Source: Anolis carolinensis
Lineage: Eukaryota
Length of the DNA: 64,000 nt
Assembly (NCBI RefSeq): GCF_035594765.1
Contig: NC_085841.1
Span: forward strand, 186,605,574 to 186,669,573
Direction: 5' to 3'
The position numbers and the translations under genes were made by a program. Below, one piece after another: positions 4,646 to 61,430 of the stretch. Under the pieces are notes generated by a model, which had not been told where the DNA came from, ran no database searches, and was given only the letters and a program-made list of their open reading frames with translations. How positions within the stretch are numbered: the stretch's first letter is position 1; each line of letters begins with the position of its first letter.

Positions 4646-6225
4646 TGTTAGAGCTTCCCTGCCTCTATGTCAAGACAAAGAATGTCTGCAAAATGATAAT
4701 GATGGAAGGAACACTATTAGGGCTAGGTTAACTGCCCAGGTAGGTACATGCGACATGGTAGCAAATGGTAGTGCAGTTGGGTAGTACAAGAGTAGTTACT
4801 GGATGGGGTGAAGGAATGGTGTGGCAGCTTGTAACAATTAAATGTAATGCTAAAGAAAGTCAATCTGGTTCAGGAGAATGCAGAGTGGAGCTGAATTATT
4901 TAAATAGTCTAGGTCAGGACTTTTTTTCAACATTACCAAGTTGATCTGATAATCCCACATTTACTGGCTAATCCACCTGCAGCCTTCTGTTCCTATCCAT
5001 TCATATTTTTGTCTGTCTTAGATGATGTCCCAAAAGAAATAAAGAGAAAGTAAAAGTTCTCTCAGGGGACGACACGCCAGAACATCTCTGCAGGGTGTTC
5101 AGCGGGAGCCTCCTGCAAATTCAAGCCATTAACATGACAGCACATCTGATCTCGACAGTGCAGAACCGCTGTCATCTCTTGCTTCCCTTGGCCCACCTGG
5201 GAACAGTTGCTTTTAAATGGCAGCAGCCGACGCCTGGTGCATCAGGATTCAAAGCTTAGCAGGCCGTGCTCTTTGCAGGGGCTGCAGAAATCTAAGTGCC
5301 CCGACTAAAATAGAACAGAGAGATAAATTGCACAGCCTTGGCCAAATGGCACATGCCTTTAATTCCAAATATGAGCTGCTGAAACTTGCAGATGTCATTA
5401 GTCGAAAGTGGAAACAGGACATACATCAGCCTCCAGCTATCAAAGATTATGTGGATTCAACATGAAAAAACACCTCCTGGGCTTAGAACAGATCAAAATT
5501 CAGGCCATAGGCTAGAAGAGGAGGATTAATTTACCACAGTGGAGTAGGGACGGGGGTGGGGAGGGGGGAGTTCATTGTTGTTCAGGCATCCTGTTAGTGA
5601 TATAACACCGGTGTAAATTGTGTGACACGTGAAGAGTGATACATATTGTTTTGGACAATATGGAATAGTTATATCCAGCTGACAACAGCATAACTGGAAT
5701 TCACTTGTATCACAATAAAGTACACAGTAATGTCTGAATAGGCATTGCCTCGATACATTACTTTTGTTCATTCTGCATTGTAATTGTCTGTCATGCCTAT
5801 TGACCACTGATCGTCATATCTTATGCTACAATGGTAATCTTTGTAGGGGTTCTATAAAACAATTCTGTCAGCAGATATTCACTCTACGCAGAAGAAAAGA
5901 CTGATTCGAATTTACCCAAATTTCTATAAATTCAGTCAGAATGAATTTGTAACTTTACGTCTTCAAATGCAGGGAAGATAAGCCTGACAGATTAATCTAC
6001 TCATGCTCAGATTTTTGGGTATTAATTGAGCACTCAACTTAAATGTTTGACTTGCAATCTTTATGGTTGTTCTGCCTAACTAGGGCTTCTTTCAGCCTGG
6101 ACCAGAATCCTGTTCATGACATATGTGTGCAACATCCCAACTCCTTTCTTACATGGGGAAGGGAGCTACTGCTGATGCTTACTGGTGGAGAGGAGAGAGA
6201 GAAGGTGGATACACTTGCTCTAAGC

Positions 6226-9348: not shown

Positions 9349-10964
9349 AAACAAACTCTATGGTCCATAATTGTACAGGATGCAGTCATGGATTGATAAC
9401 AGTATAATAGGACCCTGGCTTTGCCCTTCCCCCTCCCCAATTCTACTCCATACCAAAATTGCAGGGATTGATGCATTCGTATTGAAACTCAGGAAAGGTC
9501 TTTAGCCCCCATTAAGCCAAAAACCAAGGTTGCTGCAGTGCAGATTAAACTGCTATTCCTTCACCAGAGCTACTTTTAAGTCTTGTTTGTTTTTACCCAA
9601 GGACTTGAGAAGTGGTGAGGGTACATTCATCTAGGAACGCAACTTTTCCTAAGAGAGATGTACGCATCAATTTAAAAAATGCAGTCCTTGAGCTGCGTTT
9701 TTTAAAAGCAATACGGGAAGGAACTTAAAGGTATGAAGAGCAAAAGATTTAGCGGACCTGGCGGCCATAGATATATGCGAGGCAGTAAAATATCACACCT
9801 CCTTTAGGACTCAGCATAATCAAAGGGCAGGAAAGAAATAAACCCTTGACAAGAGGCTGAATATGAAAACCAAATGACTTAGCAATAAAGTGCCACTGTG
9901 CCATTCTGCAACCATCTTCCATACATCTTCCACTCTTGCACTCCCTTTTGAATCCTACTCAGCATGCAAGGCAGGTTTTCGTCTTTGCCACAGTGCCTGT
10001 TGGGCCACTCAGCTGCATAGTTGAAATTTTAATGCTGTGTAATGTGCCTTCTCAGGTCAGTATCCAGTTACTCCAAAATGAATGTTGGGCTACACTCAGG
10101 AGGTGCAAAAGTGCAAATATATCTTTGCAATCACCCAACATTATTTTGAGATGTTCACAGAAGGAATTAGTAGGTGACCAGTAAAGGACTGGAAGCTTCA
10201 GAAAGCTATTAAAAGAAAGACTACTTAAAACAGAAGGAAAAACCTTCTCTTCTGTTTAGCTTACCTGCAATTCTTAGTAACTATGCTGCATTTAAATTGA
10301 GATTCTGGAGGGCTCTTCCCCCAACAATGTGTGCATACGTGTAGGAAAGGCCTGAATGAAGAGTAAGGGCAAGCTGGGATCAGAAATTGAATTGGATGGA
10401 GATGCTGAAATGCTAAGAAGAGCACACTTTGCACTTGAGAATTCCCATTGTTTAGTCAAAGAGTCTGGCCAGCCACAAAATGCGAAGGGATGAACATGCA
10501 GCTGCATAAATGGAGCTGAAATACTCTGCCTGGTGATTCCTTAGAGTGAGATTTTACTTGATATAGATTTTTCACCTGGATTTAAGTACTTGCCAGAGTG
10601 AAGGACTTGAGTGGGTTTTGAATACGGGAAAGGATTTACTAAACAACCACCACCACCATTTCTCAACTGCCTCCCCCCCCCCCCCTAACTGAGGCAGGGA
10701 AGAACAGATCAGAGTATATACTTTTCGAATTGCTTTTGGCAGGATATTTCACGATTTGAAGGTTATTGATGAAAACATCTTTTGGTTAATAGTTGTCTCT
10801 GTCTTATTTGTTTAAACTTTTCTTTTGCTCAGGAGTGGAAATATGCAGTCCTCTAGATGTTTTCATCAGACCTATCCAGCATAGCTTATGATGAAGGATA
10901 AACAAAGGTGTAGTCCAAAAAACCTGTAGAGACATCTCTTTATTCTTTAGTATCCTGCCAGTTA

Positions 10965-11275
10965 AAGGTAAAGGTAAAGGTTTCCCCTGACGTTAAGTCC
11001 AGTCGTGACCGACTCTGGGGGTTGGTGCTCATCTCCATTTCTAAGCCTATGTTGTCCATAGACATTTCCAGGCCATGTGGCCGGCATGACTGCATGGAGC
11101 GCCGTTACCTTCCCACCGGAGCAGTACCTATTGATCTACTCACATTGGCATGTTTTCAAACTGCTAGGTTGGCAGAAGCTGGAGCTAACAGCAGCTGCTC
11201 CCGCCGTTCCCGGGGTTTGAACCTGGGACCTTTCGGTCTGTAAGTGCTTTAACACATTTCACCACCGGGGCTCCT
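10965..11275 (-). mobile_element. Sauria SINE
   Basis: (AAAGGT)n tail on + strand; 14-bp TSD TATCCTGCCAGTTA (10951-10964 / 11276-11289). Confidence 0.95.
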
Positions 11276-17785: not shown

Positions 17786-18240
17786 AGGAGGAAAGGAGGA
17801 AGGAAAAAGAGGAGGAGGAAAGAAAAAGAGAAGGATGGCTGGAAGGAAGGGTGGAATGGAGTGGAGTGGAGGGAGGGAGGGAGGGAGGGAAGGGAGGGTG
17901 GGAGGAAGGACAAAAGAGAAGGAAGGAGAGAGAAAGAAAGAGAGCGAAGGAGAGAGGAAAGAGGCAAGGAAGGAAGGACAAAAGGGTGGAAGGGGAGAGG
18001 GAGGGAGAAGGAAGGAAGGAAGGGAGGAGGGAGGGAGGGAGGGAAGGGAGGGTGGGAGGAAGGACAAAAGAGAAGGAAGGAGAAAGAAAGAGAGCGAAGG
18101 AGAGAGGAAAGAGGCAAGGAAGGAAGGACAAAAGGGTGGAAGGGGAGAGGGAGGGAGAAGGAAGGAAGGGAGGAAGGAAGGGAGGGAGGAAGGGAGGGAG
18201 GGAGGGAGGGAGGGAGGGAGGATGGATAGTGAGGGAAAGG
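17786..18240 (+). repeat. Polypurine (GGAA/GGGA) tract containing a ~150-bp duplication
   Basis: Nearly pure G/A strand; block GGGTGGGAGGAAGGACAAAAGAG...GGAAGGGGAGAGG occurs twice. Confidence 0.9.
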
Positions 18241-21565: not shown

Positions 21566-23702
21566 TCAAGGTTCAACACTCAAACCATAGCACTACACTG
21601 GCTCTCTAATCCTTAAATTACCAAATCCCTAGCACTAAGGAAATGTCAACAAGTCACAGAAATTGGCTAGACAGGGCAACATGAATAATACAGCTATGTC
21701 TGCTTCAATGGCCCCCTATCCCTCATTATTAATGTCTCTTTTGTAAAATGATAGGGGTGCTCTTTGTTTCCTAGAAAGAACACAACACTAGAAAATTGTT
21801 ACAAGGTTTGCTTTCCTCTTCCCTCATTATAACATTTTCCTTGTGTATCATGCCTATTAGATTGTGAGCCTCTAGGCAAGGATTATCTTTTAATATTTGT
21901 TGAGCAATTAGATAATTAATGGCTTTTGGACAACAGAAATTCCAGCACAATTAATAAATGTGTTTTAGGATCTACTGTTAAAGCAGAACTGGAAATAAAA
22001 TGCAGTAACAAACTGATTTTATATTCATTGATCGTTTTGAGGGCAGACAACATTTATTTTCCTCAAAGATGCAATTCTTTGCCAAATTAATTCTCAGAAG
22101 AAGCAACAAGTAATTTTAGCAATTCCCACTTCAAAAAAACTCTGTGAAAATAATGCCTTTTTCAAAGGCTATTCACAACCCTGGACTTACTCTTCACAAA
22201 ATTCACAGGTGTATTTTTTCATTCCTGTTTCCTGCACATAAAAGGTTGTTTTTTTTTCCTGCAGGGAAAAGTGTGAACTTTACAGATATTCTCTAACAAT
22301 GCGGATTCTCAAGAGTGCAGGATTCTTCTCTCACAATCTACACACACACAAACATACATATACATACACACACACACTACTTTTAAACTCCATTACAACC
22401 CTTGTATACATGGGAATACATTCCCAGACTTTGTGTGAACACAGGAAACCACAAATAATAGCGAACTCTGTTATTTTCAATGGGATAAATGATGAAAGAA
22501 CTGAGAAGTGAATGTGCCTTATACAAAAGGCCTTAAGTGAATAAGCAAATATGTGAATAAGTAAAACCATGGATATTAGTTTCACTGATACAATGGCTGT
22601 ACTATATTTTATACCTATTTTTCAGGGTCTGTCATAGCTGTGGTTTCTAGATTGCTGTTGGTTATGCTTTTTAAATATTCCATTTGGCTGCCATTGCTTT
22701 CTATGGACAGCCTAATGTGAGACTATGAATACTGTACTGCTGTAACATAGCAGGGAGTCTCTGACAAGTGAGCAGTCATTTGTGTGGGGGCTGTGCTTCA
22801 TTGTCTGTGAGACCAAGGCTCAGATTTTCCTTTTGAGAAGATTCAGAGCCAGTCCAAGACACTTTGCTACCTGAAGCAGAACAGCTAATGGCCCTTCCAC
22901 ATACACAAGTCAAGTCGTATTGCACCCAATGCCAGACAAGTTATTTTGTTAAATGAGGCAGAAAATCCTGTTAAGCACCTCTCTTCATTCTGCCAACAAA
23001 ACTATGATAATAGAAAAACTAACAATGTTGCTGCCCCTTTCTTGCTATTCGAAATCTGTCTCCTAAGATGGTTGCCTCTTTCTGCCCGATGGTAGGGTTG
23101 GACTGGAGTATGACCTTGAAAGGGCAGCTCTATTTTATCCATTCCACTGGTTCTGCTAGCAGGCTCCACCTAGCATGGCCAAATACCAGAGAAGAGCATA
23201 CCAACTAGAATGGAAAAGCTGCCTCACGTTCTATATATTTGCATAAGTTATTATATTTCCTTCTATAAGTTATATTATATGCTACTTTGGAGTCCATTAT
23301 GGGAGAAAAGAAAGATATATAATAGCCAGCTAGCTAGTAGTTAGCTAGTCATCTTGTGAATTTGTGTAGAATTGCTATCCATTTCTGTTGTTTCATTTGT
23401 AAGCCCCCCCCCCCTTTTCATGTTTACACATCTCCCTAAAACGGGCATCTTTCCGAATGGGCATTTTTGTAGCACATCTGAAAAAAATGAAAAATTTCAA
23501 CCCATGGGCCACTCCCCAGGCTCCCCTTCCCCTCAGTTCTAGGGCTAGAGGGGTGAAAATCACCACACATGGAGGCCACATCTACCATTTTTAGCCCACA
23601 AAGTTGTATAACATTTGGACCATCCCCTGATTTTTAGGGATTTTTTCTTTCTATAAATAAAATCTCCTTAAAAACACTCCCTCTTTCCCCTCACTTCAAA
23701 GG

Positions 23703-24557
23703 GGTGATGCCTCATGGGCCTTGTAGTCCTGCTCCGAGTGCCATCGTGGCCAATGAAGACGAAAACATGGGGTTTTCGCCGGTTCAGCAAGAGCCGGAAT
23801 CTTTCCAGATGCCTGATGTTGATGTTTTTGCCCAAGAACCCATTAAAACAGACCTTGAGCAGCTCTCACCCCCTTTTGCTAGGAGACAGTCCTATACTGC
23901 AGACAGGGGAGTGAAAGAACAGGTTGGCAGGAGCTTGAGAATTGCAGCTAAACAAGACACTGATTAGCCATGTTTCCCCTGGGAAAATCTAGAGAGTCTC
24001 ACATCTGGAGAAAGCTGGGTTTCGTTTCCTGTTCTCTAGGGAAAGAGAACGCTGGACACCTGCTTGGCAGGAAAACGGGGCCCAGATATAGGTGCCTGGC
24101 ACGGTAGGTTCCATGCGGAGTCAACAGAGCAGCTTCAGGAGTGATTTAGTGTTCCCAGCCTTGTGTGGACTTCGCAAAGTCCGCAAATCCAGTTTCCTTG
24201 CCTTGCCTATCCAAGTATTCAAGAATTGCCTTGCCTCGTTCCTAGTCACGGACCTTGTTCCTAGAATCAAGTTTTGTTTCCAGCCTTGTTGTAGATTTAC
24301 CTTGGACCTTGAAAGACCCTGGACAATTCCCCACACTATTGCTTGGCAATAGTGTGTGTTTCGGTTTATTGGATTTTATCTTTGGACTCTAATATCATTT
24401 ATTGGACAAAATATTTCTGGACTATGTTTGACCTCATTCGATAGGTCTGCTTCTGGACTATATTTTCTACTTGTTTTTATTATTCTTATATATTTCCTTA
24501 ATAAAGATTATTGGCCTCCGTGTTCGGTTCTTGGTGCTCCGCTGCCTTGGCGTGACA
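23703..24557 (+). mobile_element. Solo LTR, Gypsy-type
   Basis: (G/T)GTGATG...GTGACA ends, AATAAA at 24500-24505, colinear with the TSD-flanked LTR at 60269-61130. Confidence 0.88.
23704..23967 (+). CDS. LTR-encoded ~87-aa ORF (probable Pol/integrase C-terminal extension or small accessory protein) ending GRSLRIAAKQ
   Basis: 47/85 aa identical to the ORF at 60872-61129, with 20 synonymous differences and the stop at the same position. Confidence 0.55.
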   Translation: MMPHGPCSPAPSAIVANEDENMGFSPVQQEPESFQMPDVDVFAQEPIKTDLEQLSPPFARRQSYTADRGVKEQVGRSLRIAAKQDTD

Positions 24558-24647
24558 CCGCATGACATGAAAGCAGGTGAGGAGCTGGTAACTGCTCCCG
24601 CTTGCTTTTGTGTCGAGCTTACTTTCTTTCTGGGGGAGGGGTTTCCA

Positions 24648-25025
24648 TACTGATAACACCACACCACATAACTCCAGATTGTCAATTTCATGCAAATATT
24701 AAAAGGCACTGGAGATAGAATGGCTCCTTGTGGAATACCATATAACAGCTCATTTTTTGAGGAGCAGCTATCCCCAAGCATGACTATCTGGAACCTTCTT
24801 GAAAGGTATGACCAGAACCATTGCAGCACATCCAGCATTCCAGAAGGATGCCATGGTTGATGGTATTGAAACTGCTGAGAGGTCTAGAAGCATCAACAGA
24901 GATACATTCCCCCTGTCAGTGTTAAGACAAAGATCCTCCACTAAGGCAACCATAGCAGTCTCATCTCCATATCTTGCTCTGAAGCTGGTTTGAAATTAGT
25001 CAAGGAAGTGTGTGTCATTCCTTCA
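24648..25025 (-). pseudogene. L2-clade LINE reverse transcriptase fragment
   Basis: Translations ALVEDL..DRGNVSLLMLLDLSA, LQWFWSYLS.R.Q, YGIPQGAILSP; frameshifted. Confidence 0.9.
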
Positions 25026-25639
25026 GAATTGCCAAGAGTGTTCTTTAAAAACTTTTATCTCTTTCAGCTTTCTACTCATCTCTAACTGAAATGGGAAAAA
25101 AATCAATAGTATTAATGAATAACACCAGGCCAAGCACAAGACAAGCACAGCAGGAGATAGTTGGCTTAATGAACATGTTCTGCACAGGGATGGAAAGTGG
25201 AATGTTGGGAAGGAGCACAATCTTTTCCCAGGCATCCTAATATTCTCTTGATCCAGACATCTGTTTCTTCTTTATGTCCATTTTGCACATCTGTTCCTAT
25301 TGTTTATATTACTGATGTAATGTTCTTATGACTTAGTTTTATCATATCCTACCATGAGCATTTCAGGACAGAAATGAATGGATAAATGAAACCATGAATA
25401 TTGAATTTGGGGTTGAAAAGGTAATTCTGTAGGGAGAGAATATAGCAATTGGGAACAGAATGTACATGCAGCAAATGTTTCCTTGATGTGAAATTGCTTG
25501 CCAGATATGTGTTCATTAATCATTTTCAATCCATAGCCAATGGAACAACCTAGTATAGTTATCCATATTGTATTCAAGTGATATAATTTTCTCTTTCTCA
25601 TTCTAAAAATACATGATCTGAGCTAAAATAGTGTAGCAG

Positions 25640-25840
25640 AATCAGCATGGTGTAGTGATTTGAACATTGCACTTTGGAGACCAGGGTTCGAATCTCTGTT
25701 TCAATATGGAAATGCACTGGGTGACCTTGAGAAAATTGCATTATCTTCGCCTCAAAGAAAGAGAAATTTTGCCAAGGAAATCCCATGATAGGGTCACCAT
25801 AAATGGCAAATGATTTAAAAGCATGCAACAGCAACAAACA
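25640..25840 (+). mobile_element. Old tRNA-derived SINE with RTE-like tail
   Basis: A-box TGGTGTAGTGA, B-box GGTTCGAATC, GGGTCACCATAA...CAACAGCAAC tail. Confidence 0.8.
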
Positions 25841-26197
25841 TTATTGCTTGCAAAATGCCCAACAAAGGACATGGAATTAAAATCTGATGACTACATAATA
25901 TGAAAGGTGTTAAGCATACTACAATTTACTCTCCATTAAGCTTGTTTCCAAATATCTTGTCATTTGGAGCAGGAGAGGCATGGAGGCAGGTTAAACTGAA
26001 TATCACATGGCAACTGTACTGGAAGAATTTGCAAGCAGAGTGACCTGAGAATATTCAGTGATCTGAGAAATTGCCACTCTAAAACTGTCCCTTTTGTTAC
26101 ACCTACTTACAATATATGTTATTAATAAAAATACCACAGTATATCTTCTTGAGCCTTAGATTGCCTATCATTTTAAACATATTATTGAAGGATTCCA

Positions 26198-26400
26198 GGG
26201 CCTAAATATTCTGAAGGCACTAGATCCCATCTGGTCTTGGAAGATAAACATCGTCAGGCCTAGTTAGCACCATGTTGGAAATACTAGGTACTGTAGGCTA
26301 TATTCAGAGGAAATCAATAATAAGCCACCTCTATTAATTACTTAAGAAAACCTTGTGAAATTCATGGAGCCATCATAAATTAACAGGCAACTTGAAGGTT
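26198..26400 (+). mobile_element. 5S rRNA-derived SINE (SINE3 / 5S-Sauria-like)
   Basis: GATCCCATCTGGTCTTGGAAGATAA..CAGGCCTAGTTAG...AATACTAGGTACTGTAGGCT resembles 5S rRNA, followed by an RTE-like tail. Confidence 0.75.
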
Positions 26401-28970: not shown

Positions 28971-29593
28971 CAGTGGTTCCCAACCTGTGGTCCATGGACC
29001 ACCAGTGGTCCCCAAGAACTAAAATATGCTCCACAGGCTCATAGTTACTACACCATTGTAACGTGAGTGGCTGGTCTCGCAAAACCCTCTTATAGTGCTG
29101 AGGCAACAGGGATGTTGGGAGGGGAGAGGCTGACAATCCATGAAAGGCGCAACAACAAGCCTCCTGACTGCTGCTTCTCGTCTTCCTCCCTCCCCCTGAG
29201 CAGAGCCTTCCCATGTAGTGCCTGGAAGTGGGAGCGCCTTGGTGTCTTCATTTTTAGGCCTGTTCTTGGGGTTATTTGGGGTGCTGATTCAGAAAATGGC
29301 ATTGGATAGAACACATCAGTTCTAGATTATTAAATATGATTTTCTCTGGGTGAGCAGATGGCGACTACTGGATGGAATATGTTCTGTATCAGAAACAGAG
29401 CTGATGTGATCTGTACAATGCAATTTTCTGAATCCGCACCCCAAATATGCAAGCCTAATCTAAAGTAGAGTAAAAACCGATTTGTAACCCTTTTGGTACT
29501 AATGTTGGAGAGTGATCCCTGATCAAAGTAGACCCTGGTCAAAGTGGTCCCTGTTCAAGTGGTCCCTAGTCAAAAAAAGGTTGGGAACCACTG
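28971..29593. mobile_element. Non-autonomous hAT element nested in a Harbinger-like MITE (~28956-29709)
   Basis: TIR CAGTGGTTCCCAACCT / AGGTTGGGAACCACTG; TSD ATGTACAG/ATCTACAG. Confidence 0.88.
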
Positions 29594-31465
29594 ATCTACA
29601 GCAGAGAAGTTTGACACCACTTTAATTGTCTTTATACAACTGCAATTCCCATGATTCCATAGCAATTAAAGTGGTGTCAAACTGCATTAATTCTACAGTG
29701 TAGCTGCCCACCAAGTAGTGGCTATAGATGAGCAACTTCCTGCCCCTTGCCTGATCTTCCTGTTGAATTAGTTTACTCATCTTTGGACTGGACAGACCTT
29801 CAAACAGAAGGCACCTTTAAACAGGAGAACAAATGGCTATGTAGTACAGGATACAAAAGAATAAAATATCTCTTTGTATAATGCTTGAAATGTAAATGGG
29901 GAGGGTATATTTTTTTTAAATCAGGCATTAAGAATATTTTCTAAAAGTTGCCATCCCCACACCTGTTGCCATGCTCCAGGGAATCTTTCCTTTTAAAATT
30001 GCCAACTTGGACTTGAGTTGCTATCCTTCTTCCATTATTAAAAGTAAATCCCAGTTCCAAAAGAAAAAGAATTTTGACCCTGAGCAGCTCTAATTTGGGG
30101 ATATCAAAGCAGGCAGCCTTTGTCAACATGACTCATTTGCAGTGTCATTCAACATAGCCCAAGCGGCTTGACAAAAGCTCATTAATGCAAGAGCCCCTTT
30201 CATAATAAGCCCAAACCTTTTAAATATACAAATAAATCCAAGCCGTAGAAGAAGATGGAATATTCTTCGGTTTTACAGCAAATTAGGTTTAATGGACAAT
30301 AAGTGGCAAGGTTTTAAGGGCGGAGGGAGGAAGAGTGAATCTGTTGATCAATATTTAATCAAGAGCTCTTTATTTTTTCATAAAGGAAGGCTTTTTTTAA
30401 AAGGCCTGATTTAAAATCAGCGACAAGGTTGGATTCCGTAATTCCACAGGGTTACTGCCATATATAACAAGCCAGAGACAGAACAGCTAAAGAAACCTTC
30501 ACTGATTCAACCAAAATGTAGATTAACAGCAGGAGGAGACAAAAAGCCCCAGTAACACATCACAGAAAGTGAAGGGTGCCGTTTTTCTGATGAGGGCCGG
30601 GGAGCAAAGAAAGGGGAAAAGCAGATTGAATTTTGTAAATACGCAACCTATTTGAAGACCATGCTTTTTCAAAATATCTACTATAAAAAGTATATGCTAT
30701 AATCAAGAAAAGGCTTGCCAAGCAAATTGCAAGTCTATTTTCAGATTTAAGAGGTCACATCTTTCTCTTCTCTCTTCCATGCTTTTCAAGTTTCTTAATT
30801 GTTCTTACAGACCCGAAGGGGATCTTTTCATGATTGCTATAATTCACCCCACTAAATTTCACACTGTAACTTGTCTTTTTCTGACCTGCCAACATTAGTG
30901 TTTATTCATTATTCCCTCCTTCCCATTAAAAATTTAGGGAAAAGAAATCTAATCAGACACTAATAACTGCAAGATGATGAAGCTATTCACCTGAGGTAAA
31001 TTACTGGCTATGTCATAGAAGTAATGCAATCCCTACCAATCCCTATGAAGTTAAATCAAATAGGATTTTGAAGGAATATCAATTCCAACACAACTAATGA
31101 GGGTTTTGGGGTTAAATGTGCCAGGTGAAAAAGTAGAGTCTGCTAAAAAGGCTGTGTGATCATATTTTGGCGTGGGAATGATTCCAAGATACACTTGGAT
31201 TTATGCACTCTGGACTTCTGACAGTTCTTTTTAGTGTTGCTTGTTCAGCTATTTCCTCCCTGTTTCTTTGGCTGTATCAAAATACATATGAAAGCAAATA
31301 CACGAAGTAGGGAATTCCACTAGATAAACCTTTTGTGTATTGTCACTAACTCCTCCAGTTTCTCCATCTCTCCTGCTCCTTCACAATAAGCATAAATCCA
31401 GAAATCTAACTCCCAGAATTCCCACCCACATCCCACCCATGCTAAATTGGCAATGATAGGAATTA

Positions 31466-35518: not shown

Positions 35519-36782
35519 GAAGAAATCGGGGCCCGGACTGGTTCATACAAGGGGATGCGGTCAGCCAAATAGCCTGGACCTGAACCATCTAGGGCTTTAA
35601 AGGTCATAATCAGCACTTTGAATTGTGCCCAGTAACAGACTGGCAGCCAGTGGACTTGCTTCAACAAAGGGGTTGTCTGTTTCCTGTAGCCAGCCCCAGT
35701 TAGCAACCTGGCTGCAGCTCTTTGGACCAGCTAAAGTTTCTGAGCACTCTTCAGAGGCAGCCCCACATAGAATGTGTTACAGTAATCCAGATGGGATGTA
35801 AATAAGGCATGTATCACCATGGCCAGATCTGGCTTCTCAAGGAATGGGTGCAGTTGGTACACAAGTTTTAATTGTGCAAAAGCCCTCCCAGCCATTGCTG
35901 ACACCTGGTCCTCCAGGTTCACTGCCGAGTCCAGGAAGACTCCCAAACTGCAGACCTTCAGGGGGAGTGTGACCCCATCCAGCACAGGCTATATCCCTAT
36001 TCCCTGATCTGCCTTTTGACTGACCAGGAGTACCACTGTCTTGTCTGGATTAAGTTTCTATCGGTTTGCCCTCATCCAGTCCATTACTGATGAGAGGCAC
36101 TGGTTTAGGATCAGGACAGCTTCCTTGGCTTTAGGTGGGAAGGAGTAGTAGAGTTGGGTGCCACTGCATATAGGTGGCACCGAACTCCAAAACTCCAGAT
36201 GACCTCTCCCAGAAGTTTCATGTATATATTGAACAGCATGGAGGACAAAATACAATCCCACACGTAAATGACTAGGGGGCCAAACAGGAGTCCCCCAGCA
36301 CCACCTTCTGGGTACGGCCTTCCAGGAAGGACCATAGCTACTATAAAACAGTGCCTTCTAGTCCCATCCCAGTGAAATGACCCAGAAGGATACCATGGTC
36401 AATGGTATCAAAAGCCACTGAGAGATCCGGGAGACACACTCCCCTCTCTAGCTCTCTGCAGAGGTCATCCACCAAGGTGACCAAAGCTGTCTCTGTTCCA
36501 TAGCCAGGCCTGAAACCAGATTAAAATAGTTCTAGATAATCCATCTCATCCAGAAATCCCTGAAGTTGTGAGGCCACAACATGCTCTAAGACATTACTCA
36601 GAAATTGGAGATTGGACACTGGCCGATAATTATCCATTATCGAGGGTTTTAGGGATGGCTTTTTAAATATAAGCCTCACAACTGACTCCTTTAGGCAAGT
36701 TGGAACCTTTTCTTGTTCCAAGGAGGCATCTACCACCCCCTTCATCCACTCTGCCAGTCCCCCTCTGGCCTGTTTGATCAAC
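35519..36782 (-). pseudogene. L2-clade LINE ORF2 fragment (RT and downstream region), truncated at both ends
   Basis: KKPSL.P..DNYRPVSNL.FLS.VLE, LFNIYMK.LG, QLYYSF, WM.AN, SLGV.LDS, LDYCN, LKQVHWLPV; multiple frameshifts. Confidence 0.93.
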
Positions 36783-37151: not shown

Positions 37152-38460
37152 TGTATATACTCCTGTATAAACTGATCTCGTGTATAAATAAATCATGGGC
37201 AGGTTTGGGAGGCAAAATTATGGATTTGTATATGACCTATTGATTAGTTCAGGTCCATTCTGCAGAGAGGGGAAAACATTGAATTCCACTTGGGGGTCAG
37301 CTGCTCTGGATGCTACCACCATTTTTCTTCCCAGCCACTGAAGCAGCCAGACACAACCCCATGGCAGAGAGAGTCGAGGGGGTTTGTTGTAGCCCAGCCT
37401 GCACCTGAGCTATCAGGTGGGCCTGAGGTTGGGCTTGTTCAGCCTGTGATTGTACCTGCACCTGACTTGTCAGATGAATCTGGGTTGGGACCTAGGATTC
37501 CCATGCAGCCAGAGTTGGATAAGGCTACTGTTCCTGGACAGCCAGAGTTTGTTCCTGAGGATTCTGGGAGCAGGTAGACAATGGTTTCAAGCAGGCAGCT
37601 TGAACAGCATTCCTTGGGAGAGTCAAGATCGAGTTATTCCTTGGCAGATGGGCATTCCAGTTGTGATAACAAAGACAAAAAAGGGAGATTTTGAGAAGGA
37701 GCAGACTTTTGCTAATGAGAAAGGGCTTTGATCAAACTCCTCGCAGAAAAAGGCCTTGATTCCAGCTTTAAGAGGAACTGCTTCTGAAAGAGATTTTAAG
37801 AGGTGGTAACTATTTCATGGACTCTTGTTTCATGCTTCATGGAATCTTGTTTCATGTTACCTGTGGACTTTCATTCCAAGTTCCTGTAGCCTTGTATCTT
37901 GAGTTTTGTTCCACTTCCTGTTGTTGCTCCTTGGGATTTTGGATTATCAAGTAATTGTTCCTGAAAGCTTTGCAGTTTGGATCTCTTGCTCCAGTTAAAG
38001 ATCCTGTTCTTTGTTCCAGTTTTAATCCTTTACCTTGGACTAATTTTGATACCTTGTTGAAGTTCATTCTTGTGTTTGATTTTCATGGACCCTTGCTTCA
38101 AGATTCTCAAGTATCTGTACTTGATGGACTAAAACCTTGTTTCATTGACTTTGATCTTTGATTTGCCATTGCTTACATATATTCTTCAATAAACAACTTG
38201 CTTTGCTTATAGTCTGAAGCTCCAGTGTGGTTTTGAGGTGTCTCTGCAGTCTAGGGGTGCAACAGGGTTGGTGTTTCTTTTAGGTTCTCCAGGAACAGGC
38301 TAAACTCTTGCCTTTGACTATTGTACTCAGTGAAAGAAATTGCTCCTTTTTTGTTATCAGCTAAGATGCAGTACTTACATTACCCATGGATAGTTTGACT
38401 CAACTTTTGGGGGCCAATTATTTTACTAAATTTTCTAGATTTACTTATAAGTAGAAACAG
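37152..38460. mobile_element. pogo/mariner-like non-autonomous element interrupted by a solo LTR
   Basis: GTATATACTCCTGTATAA start; homologous to 11451-12223 on both sides of the LTR. Confidence 0.65.
37385..38264 (+). mobile_element. Solo LTR, Gypsy-type (distinct family)
   Basis: TGTTGTAGCCC...GGGGTGCAACA, 5-bp TSD GGGTT, AATAAA at 38188-38193. Confidence 0.9.
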
Positions 38461-59163: not shown

Positions 59164-60268
59164 TCAAACCTATTTTAATCTAGTGTATCAAAAATGCTCA
59201 TTTGTGGTATTCTAGTAGGAAAGCCAAGTTCTCAGTTATTCCCAAACTAAAGACAATCAAATTCACTGACACATTCCTTTAGTTCTTCAACTTCGCATTG
59301 GAGCTTCCCTGACACTGAACACATGCATGCATAAATATTAAGGTGGTCTTGCTGATACATACTCCAGCACACAGCGCTGTGTTGGGAATTGTTGCTTTAG
59401 AGTCAGTGGATGTATATTAAGGCAGTCATCAGTTCAGTCCCCAAAGCTGAAATTATTTATGTGAGCAAGAATCAACAAATATGCAGATAGATAGTTAGAT
59501 AGATAGGTCTTGTGTGTGATAGATACTGAGAGAGAGAGAGAGAGACTGAAAGTGGATTCCTGGGATAAAAAGAAGGTGAAGGATATTATACAAAGATATA
59601 TGGGACGATATAAACAGAGGCCCCTAATCCAGTTGACTGTAAATCCCCTTTTCCTTAATTGGTTTAGAAGCTGAGGTCTGTAATGTGAGACTAGGGGCTC
59701 TCAGCTGCTTTTCTTCTTTGCTGCCTGGAATCACATTAAGTGGAAAACAATGGCAGGAGTGACAGCTCCCTGTCTGCAGGGGCACTTAGAGTTAATCTGC
59801 CATTGAGACTAATACAATTATTTGGGATTATAGGATTGCCAACAGATACATAGATTAAGGAAATTCCCAAAGAGAGGCCAGGGTGGAATATTTCCATATG
59901 GGGGCAAGGTAAAGCTTTGATATTTCACCCATACTTTTGCTCTTGCTTTTTTGAGAAGTGCCTCAATTGAAGAAGAGTGATAGAGCAGACATTTAAGGAA
60001 AGAGAGAAACAGCAGTACAATGATTAGCTTTAAGGTTGTTGTAGCTTGAGAACCAACATGGTATAGTAATATGACAACCTCATCACACACACCCCTTGCT
60101 GTTTTGCCAGCAAACCTGGTGAAATGCCAGGCATGCAGGGTGAATCCATTTCCCTGCACGCTGCTCCTGCGCAGTGAGTTTTCCCGATCACACGAGGGAA
60201 GTGTCACCCAATGCAGACAGAAGAATTTTTATATATGTGTTTTTTGTAAGCTGCCTTGAGTCCCCTGT

Positions 60269-61130
60269 TGTCAGGACCCAGGCTGCGGAGCACCAATAAC
60301 CATGCGCAGAGACCAGAATCTATCTAATATCTTTATTAAAGGAATATATAAAGTCAATAAAAACAAGTGAAGAATATAGTTCAGAAGTAGACCTTTCAGG
60401 AAAGGTCAAATTTAGTCCAGGAAAACAATGTCCAATATGTGATATTAGAGTCCAAAGTTATAATCCAATAACCGAAACACACACTTTGCCGAGCAAAGTG
60501 TGGGGAAATGACAAGGTCCTTTAGTCCAATGGAGCTTGACAACAAGGCTGGAAAACAAACTAGATTCTTGGCAAACAAGACTTGATACGAGGCAACAAGA
60601 AGCAAGAAGCAAGAACAAGGTCCGTGGCGAGGTCCGGGGAACAAGGCAGGCTTGGAACTTGGTCCTGGAAACAAGGAACTGGAGTAGCGTAGTCCACACA
60701 CGATCTCACTCCTGAAGCTGACGAATTGACTCCGCAAGGATTTCCTTGCGGTAAAACACCTATATAGGATCTTGTTTTCCCGCCAAGGAACACTTTCCCT
60801 GGGGAACAAGAAGTGAAACCCAAACTGTGTCCAGATGCATGACTCCTTAAGATTTCCCAAGGGAAACAGGTTTAATCAGCTAATTGTCTGGCAGCGATTC
60901 TGGCGCTTCGGCGATTCGCCTCCCTAGCGCCTCTATCTCTATTATAATTATCCTTACGAGAAAACGGGGGAGAATTCTGCCCAAGGCTTGTTTGGCTGAC
61001 TTCTTGAGGGCAAACATCCTGCAGGTGCAGGGGCTCCGATTCTGGCTGAATCGGTGGGAAACCCAAGTTTTCCTCTTCGTCTGCCACAATAGTACTAGGA
61101 ACGGGACTACATGGCCCATGAGACATCACA
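60269..61130 (-). mobile_element. Solo LTR, Gypsy-type
   Basis: TGTGATG...CCTGACA on the minus strand, perfect 5-bp TSD CCTGT, AATAAA at 60332-60337 (-), TATATA at 60761-60766. Confidence 0.93.
60872..61129 (-). CDS. LTR-encoded ~85-aa ORF ending RRSARIAARQ
   Basis: Intact homolog of the ORF at 23704-23967 with codon-level conservation. Confidence 0.55.
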   Translation of the reverse strand: MMSHGPCSPVPSTIVADEEENLGFPPIQPESEPLHLQDVCPQEVSQTSLGQNSPPFSRKDNYNRDRGAREANRRSARIAARQLAD

Positions 61131-61236
61131 CCTGTTGGGTGAGAAGGGCGGGATATAAATATTGTAATAAATAAATAAATAAATAAGCGTGCTGGCTCCA
61201 CTGGCTCCAACATAGGAGTCTTCTCATGTTGGCAAG

Positions 61237-61373
61237 GAAGTGTCCTCTTTACTAGAGCTTTTAATCTATGTTAATTTTATCAATATTTGTATGTATGTAT
61301 TTTTATCCTTTACAATTTTATCTTGTAAATCGCCTAGAGCATCGTGGATGGAGGGCGATTAATAAGTAATTAA

Positions 61374-61430
<57 letters not shown>
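61237..61430 (+). mobile_element. LINE (L2-like) 3' end with (GAT)n tail
   Basis: TGTAAATCGCCTAGAGCATC..GATGGAGGGCGATT..(GAT)n; approximate TSD GTTGG(GG)CAAGG. Confidence 0.65.

Follow-up and report, generated by a model that had tools for sequence, protein, structure and literature searches.

To our knowledge, the choice of integration site is understood for only a handful of LTR retrotransposons. Peptide tethers of retroelements include the MLV integrase tail with BET proteins, HIV integrase with LEDGF, the targeting domain of Ty5 integrase with Sir4, and the chromatin-binding sequence of foamy virus Gag with the acidic patch. In Tf1/Sushi-like chromoviruses, the reading frame is usually described as ending at or just after the chromodomain. 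Under the retroviral replication scheme, the U3 of both LTRs in a new copy stems from the 3' end of the RNA. The closest known design to the one described here is found in plant CRM elements: there, gag-pol reads on through the polypurine tract, and the 3' LTR supplies an integrase targeting motif (PMC3059260; PMC3605345).

We analyzed an open reading frame in a solo LTR within a 64-kb window (the whole stretch of green-anole DNA under analysis) and conclude that this frame is very probably an LTR-borne copy of the C-terminal integrase tail of a green-anole Ty3/Gypsy chromovirus. The extent of the LTR in the first-pass annotation of the window is corrected here to 862 bp at 60269-61130, flanked by an ACAGG duplication. 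Its features, all on the minus strand, are as follows.

60269 to 61130, minus strand: solo LTR of an Anolis chromovirus family, 862 bp with TG..CA ends; its U3 carries the tail frame.
61131 to 61135, minus strand: upstream copy of the ACAGG target-site duplication flanking the LTR.
60264 to 60268, minus strand: downstream copy of the ACAGG target-site duplication flanking the LTR.
60872 to 61129, minus strand: pol/integrase relic, the last 85 codons plus TAA, starting at LTR base 2 (T/GTG ATG).
60890 to 60913, minus strand: RRSARIAA, an HMGN/Dot5-like candidate acidic-patch anchor.
60759 to 60766, minus strand: TATA-like box TATATAGG, which lies at LTR position 365 and follows the tail stop by about 105 nt.
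60332 to 60337, minus strand: polyadenylation signal AATAAA, close to the R/U5 border and conserved in 3 of the 3 LTRs compared.

This LTR has the termini TGTGATG and CTGACA. The peptide encoded at 60872-61129 is bipartite, with an acidic, Pro-rich stretch over residues 1-50 (8 D/E and no K/R) and a basic remainder (9 K/R). Contigs from four anole sequencing runs were placed on positions 60000-61400 and used for abundance, variants, and empty sites. Empty-site contigs, which come from paralogous sites, skip exactly 867 nt, corresponding to the LTR and the duplication. The flanks at 60235-60268 and 61222-61362 are high-copy repeats themselves; other copies of the repeat join these flanks without the LTR, which indicates that the repeat was already in place when the LTR inserted. 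At 61374-61430, about 240 nt from the LTR, is an (ATG)n microsatellite with ~19 units.

A diverged relative of this LTR lies on the other strand of the window.

23703 to 24557, plus strand: isolated LTR, 855 bp, with 67.5% identity to the LTR at 60269-61130 and 76% to the LTRs of the parent element L001 described below.
23704 to 23967, plus strand: pol/integrase relic, the last 87 codons plus TAG, with 69% protein identity to the L001 tail.
23926 to 23949, plus strand: GRSLRIAA, a degenerate motif in which the Arg positions equivalent to HMGN2 R23 and R26 are both kept.

This second LTR starts with a mutated base (G for T), and its flanks showed no target duplication. The 64-kb window has neither reverse transcriptase nor integrase nor chromodomain of this kind, and both LTRs are thus isolated.

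Comparison of the two LTRs, which are 67.5% identical over about 855 nt, agreed closely with the first-pass annotation. Both open in frame from LTR base 2 (T/GTG ATG) into 85 and 87 sense codons, respectively, the single indel is 6 nt (2 codons), and the TAA and TAG stops are aligned. The count of 47 identical residues given earlier becomes 46 in a MAFFT alignment, and 20 of these 46 are encoded by different codons, as had been reported. Nucleotide conservation is no higher in the ORF part than in the remainder of the LTR, and differences between the two frames number 27, 20, and 39 at codon positions 1, 2, and 3, respectively. We computed pN/pS from Nei-Gojobori counts, pairwise among natural copies, with the 3' LTR of L001 as the third copy. 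The window pair gave 0.40 (Fisher p = 5e-7), and the three pairs of tails gave 0.40, 0.24, and 0.36 (one-sided Fisher tests, p between 5e-7 and 1e-10). In the two shifted frames, the window pair gave 1.0 and 1.6, and across all three pairs a shift by 1 or 2 bases gave ratios of 0.8-1.9, none of them significant. The low pN/pS is specific to one frame, and the tail frame therefore evolved as coding sequence. The selection proposed in the first-pass annotation was thus recovered by a dN/dS-type comparison (pairwise between natural copies instead of subfamily consensuses), with values of 0.24-0.40 in the tail frame only.

A shared open frame could also arise by chance or from DNA-level constraint on U3 without any coding role, and part of the LTR is indeed under such constraint. 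The LTR end that integrase recognizes, its first ~20 nt, is conserved as DNA and overlaps the first ten codons of the tail. However, the low pN/pS persists without the first 10 codons and in each half of the tail, the third-position excess is accompanied by a ratio that is low in one frame only, and in L001 the frame is physically joined to pol. We consider chance or DNA-only constraint scarcely credible and rejected it on the basis of the frame-specific pN/pS and the junction with pol. A second frame, starting from the ATG of CTCATGGG, is open in both LTRs (60880-61119, minus strand, 79 codons; 23714-23914, plus strand, 66 codons). Its pN/pS is about 1 or above, which identifies it as a by-product of the composition of the main frame. 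Elsewhere in the window, a purine-rich (GGAG/AGGA)n array with a 150-bp higher-order period (17789-18226) accounts for stop-free ORFs in all six frames.

We searched a profile of the two window peptides against 1.84 billion proteins and obtained five matches, three of which carry the full or a partial tail; all three are from Anolis carolinensis. One of them, P0001, joins a LINE reverse transcriptase to the tail through an insertion and has the motif variant RRSLSIAA (last Arg lost). Two LINE reverse transcriptase fragments with 41-45% identity to the reverse transcriptase part of P0001 are also present in the window, at 24641-24826 and 36165-36781 (both minus strand), the former lying 84 nt from the LTR at 23703-24557. 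Another match, P0004 (UniProt A0A803SKT3, a fragment), runs from a chromodomain in frame through ...GLEEGDS into the start of the tail (VMSHGPCSPVPSTIVADEEEN). It holds the first 24 residues of the tail type that begins at 61129, with one mismatch, and the parent of this tail type is represented by this protein fragment alone.

The third tail-bearing protein, P0002 (XP_062826559.1, LOC107983085 isoform X2), is a 166-aa RefSeq model in which the LTR frame makes up the final 91 residues and ends in RRSARIAAKHSAD; the gene model spans 173 kb. This protein is either an annotation artefact or the exonisation of a solo LTR. If the latter, some solo LTRs would have been captured as terminal coding exons, and host proteins would have gained an HMGN-like C-terminus. 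The composition of P0002 speaks for such capture, but the protein is a computed gene model whose first 75 residues match no family, and P0001 and P0004, which also bear the tail, are plainly fusions with transposon frames. We regard exon capture as very improbable. Word-indexed protein searches gave no match to the tail at lengths of 47-149 aa and, with the tail region of the 273-aa ORF of L001, nothing within the length range of the search. Six tails matched no Pfam family at E <= 10, and no match was found among PDB sequences. The tail frame also matters for annotation, since Ensembl and RefSeq models have already been built on it (A0A803SKT3, A0A803SWK3, and XP_062826559.1).

With P0004 as query, we reached the RefSeq anole gene model P0006 and through it locus L001 in GCA_035594765.1, which holds a near full-length green-anole chromovirus. 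Its LTRs (4938-5838 and 10336-11236 of the locus) enclose an internal part of 4.5 kb and differ at 11 of 901 sites, and a CTTAA target duplication flanks the element. Pfam matches comprise a gag CCHC knuckle, aspartyl protease, RVT_1, RNase H, the integrase H2C2 zinc finger and core, SH3_Tf2-1, and Chromo. The element thus has the hallmarks of a Ty3/Gypsy chromovirus: LTR ends TG..CA with a short duplication, a CCHC gag, and the pol order protease, reverse transcriptase, RNase H, and integrase. The window copies consist of LTRs only and are tied to L001 by the 76% LTR identity (seen for the LTR at 23703-24557, whose tail is 69% identical to that of L001 in protein) and to P0004 by the sequence of the tail.

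The junction between pol and the LTR is preserved in L001. Its last ORF (9767-10588, 273 aa) contains the SH3 domain, the chromodomain, ...GEGLEGGDS, and VMPHG..., and ends in ...RIRRSARIAAKQETD. In the DNA, the purine run GGGGAGGGGCTTGAGGGGGGGGATAG abuts TGTGATG, so that base 1 of the LTR completes a Ser codon as its third base, after which U3 holds 84 codons. No stop separates the chromodomain from the LTR frame; the ORF crosses the polypurine tract into the 3' LTR, which starts at 10336, and the pol frame ends 84 codons into it, in RRSARIAAKQETD. The first-pass annotation had offered an integrase C-terminal tail running across the polypurine tract into U3 as the first of two alternatives, and this arrangement is what L001 and A0A803SKT3 display. 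The L001 copy is slightly decayed: a stop codon in frame splits the integrase core from the SH3/chromodomain piece, and changes of frame occur farther upstream, so that neither a single unbroken pol nor an intact element was seen. The candidate of an env or accessory ORF was rejected because the frame is continuous with the chromodomain.

Several further observations concern L001 and related elements. The usual tRNA primer-binding site begins with TGG, and self-priming is known from Tf1. Positions 5839-5870 of L001, directly after the 5' LTR (GTTTGTCTCCGCCACC...), lack the usual TGG, and priming may be unusual in this element, for example self-priming as in Tf1. The same locus contains two more decayed chromovirus remnants of other families (23634-26199 and 29196-31009). 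The frame of the remnant at 29196-31009 stops right past the chromodomain (...HKPGP followed by a stop, at ~30925), so an LTR-encoded tail is absent from some anole chromoviruses. The window itself holds a third LTR, of a different family (TGTTG...CAACA; 37385-38263, plus strand). A polypurine-like run, AGAGAGAGTCGAGGGGGG, directly precedes it at ~37364-37382, and a stub of internal sequence may therefore remain. From base 2, an acidic, Pro-rich frame stays open for ~63 codons; it matches the L001 tail only weakly (E = 0.79).

The position of the frame within the LTR bears on what the solo copies could still do. The order within the LTR is the tail stop, ~105 nt, a conserved TATA-like box, a conserved block, and AATAAA. 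Judging from position and conservation, the TATA-like box is likely the LTR promoter and would mark the 3' part of U3, and the conserved block between it and AATAAA probably holds the transcription start. Reverse transcription would copy U3 to both ends of a new element, and every 5' LTR and solo LTR would thereby inherit the frame. There it would lie upstream of the TATA-like box and outside any pol message, so the coding signature between families would record selection on active elements, and we infer that the frames of solo LTRs are relics. The purifying selection claimed in the first-pass annotation accordingly holds for active elements, where U3 is the end of pol, and not for solo LTRs. 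Between the 5' and 3' LTRs of L001, three changes fall inside the frame (two replacements and one silent), numbers too small for a test, and these differences show no sign of constraint after insertion.

The second alternative of the first-pass annotation was an independent micro-protein, whose translation in solo LTRs or 5' LTRs would begin with the ATG of LTR base 5 and by which a chromatin-binding peptide gene would be spread. In its favor, every copy keeps the ATG, the tail frame forms the end of RefSeq model XP_062826559.1, and the contigs of the four anole runs contain thousands of pieces at no less than 99% identity, which marks a very abundant family. However, the frame is continuous with pol without a stop at the junction, and it lies ~105 nt upstream of the TATA-like box, so that LTR-driven transcripts would exclude it. 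The protein databases hold no matching protein of 47-149 aa, and the ATG is part of the conserved LTR terminus, is also found in an amphisbaenian relative (below), and resembles the TGATG of plant CRM LTRs. We did not retain this alternative, which we judge highly improbable. The contigs further showed no common indels inside the tail frame and several in the remainder of the LTR. Seven common substitutions were displayed within the frame, four of them at third codon positions, and the only common variant in the RRSAR codons (60908) is silent. A copied integrase tail accounts for a "conserved ORF" in thousands of lizard LTRs.

The architecture extends beyond the anole. A relative in the amphisbaenian Rhineura floridana (P0008, locus L002) lies between LTRs at 5638-6210 and 10579-11153 that are 97.9% identical, and its pol is 56-65% identical to that of the anole element. 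The junction codon is the same as in the anole (GAT AG/T GTC ATG, the slash marking the start of the LTR), the ATG near the LTR start is present, and 88 codons lie inside the LTR. The Rhineura tail is acidic and Ser/Pro-rich like the anole tails and ends in a different basic peptide, KRGRPVSLRPKR; similarity of its sequence to the anole tails was not detectable, and the RRSAR motif is absent. The same junction with an unrelated tail indicates that the architecture is older than the tail sequence and that the tail evolves much faster than the enzymes. By eye, the end of this tail (in 10579-10843 of the locus) contains RGRP, the core of an AT-hook, a likeness that Pfam did not match.

Within the anole, the tails of three families share a charge pattern (8-9 D/E and 0-1 K/R in residues 1-50; 7-9 K/R in the remainder) and the conserved blocks HG.CSP.PS, E.EN.GF, SPPF.R, DRG, and RS.RIAA.Q. 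The last of these contains RRSARIAA at 60913-60890, in L001, and in P0002, GRSLRIAA in the LTR at 23703, and RRSLSIAA in P0001. In the 60872-61129 tail and in L001, RRSARIAA is identical to Dot5 RRSARIAT at 7 of 8 residues and to HMGN RRSARLSA at 6 of 8. For the HMGN-like motif named in the first-pass annotation, the likeness in these two tails is exact over RRSAR, but the match covers only 5-8 residues, the other window copy has GRSLRIAA, and Pfam HMG14_17 is unmatched. Residues 22-26 of HMGN2 (RRSAR) have been resolved on the acidic patch by cryo-EM, with R23 and R26 as the main contacts, and the Dsup motif binds the acidic patch as HMGN2 does (PMC12487698). For yeast Dot5 RRSARIAT, nucleosome binding depends on the arginines and on the acidic patch (PMC13347269). 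We read the likeness of the motif as a strong lead on the putative mode of action of the tail and not as family membership.

By analogy with these proteins, the basic end of the tail would anchor the integrase to the H2A-H2B acidic patch through RRSARIAA in the fashion of HMGN, Dsup, and Dot5, a possibility that we take seriously but hold tentatively. The motif is short (5-8 residues), reads GRSLR in the LTR at 23703, has lost an Arg in P0001, and is absent in Rhineura. These points, together with the unmatched HMGN profile and the different basic peptide that ends the Rhineura tail, suit a tail that is selected but in which RRSARIAA is a nuclear localization signal, a DNA- or RNA-binding patch, or a docking site for another host factor. 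Such a role is quite conceivable. It has to be set against the exact match of RRSAR to a structurally resolved HMGN2 contact, the agreement with a Dot5 motif that has been tested, and the conservation of the motif block, which ranks with the highest in a tail whose other parts differ at ~45% of residues.

The parent integrase also carries a C-terminal chromodomain upstream of the polypurine tract (PF00385, E = 2e-10 in L001), which the first-pass annotation had not anticipated. This domain aligns to the chromodomains of HP1 beta and HP1 alpha (E ~2e-9) and has F, W, and Y at the three positions aligned to the HP1 aromatic cage, the positions of which we take from general knowledge of HP1. If a chromodomain and an acidic-patch tail act together, the integration complex would grip the nucleosome at two sites. 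More speculatively than for the motif itself, the tail may serve as an acidic-patch anchor in such a grip beside an H3K9me-type chromodomain, and the U3 of squamate chromoviruses may be an exchangeable cassette for docking peptides, with an HMGN-like peptide in the anole families and the AT-hook-like RGRP in Rhineura. An AlphaFold2 model of the SH3-chromodomain-tail piece from a 5-row alignment had a mean pLDDT of 45.8, with even the chromodomain modeled poorly. AlphaFold 3 is reported to mis-orient HMGN2 on the nucleosome (PMC12487698). If the anchor were true, an integrase with a chromodomain and a peptide identical to those of HMGN and Dot5 would represent a new mode of tethering. We found no paper that links an RRSAR/HMGN-like motif to an integrase or a retrotransposon protein, in a search that was incomplete and leaves novelty unproven.

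Each of the known systems shares part of this design. With HMGN RRSARLSA, Dsup RRSSRLTS, and Dot5 RRSARIAT, the likeness is the RRSAR (HMGN and Dot5) in a Pro/Ser-rich biased region; in contrast to HMGN, homology is absent outside the motif and the carrier is a retrotransposon integrase. The tethers of MLV, HIV, Ty5, and foamy virus dock the integration machinery on chromatin by a short C-terminal or linear peptide, as the anole tail may do. However, the MLV, HIV, and Ty5 integrase peptides bind host adaptors, the acidic-patch binder of foamy virus is in Gag, and none of these peptides is LTR-encoded. A U3 accessory gene such as MMTV sag is a poor parallel, since a start and message of its own are not found here: no stop lies between the chromodomain and the LTR frame, and the protein searches returned no free-standing homologues. 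Type I chromodomain chromoviruses (Tf1/Sushi-like) have the same order of pol domains and a C-terminal chromodomain with three aromatic cage positions, whereas the anole and Rhineura elements continue 84-88 codons into the LTR. This last feature is that of the plant CRM elements of group A (those with the CR motif), in which the LTR encodes a putative targeting domain at the integrase's C-terminal end and the LTR termini are TGATG; in both L001 and the Rhineura element, as in CRM, the pol frame ends inside the 3' LTR. In CRM, the LTR-encoded CR motif replaces the chromodomain and is linked to centromeres, whereas the anole element, in a vertebrate host, keeps its chromodomain upstream of the polypurine tract and adds an unrelated tail from the LTR.
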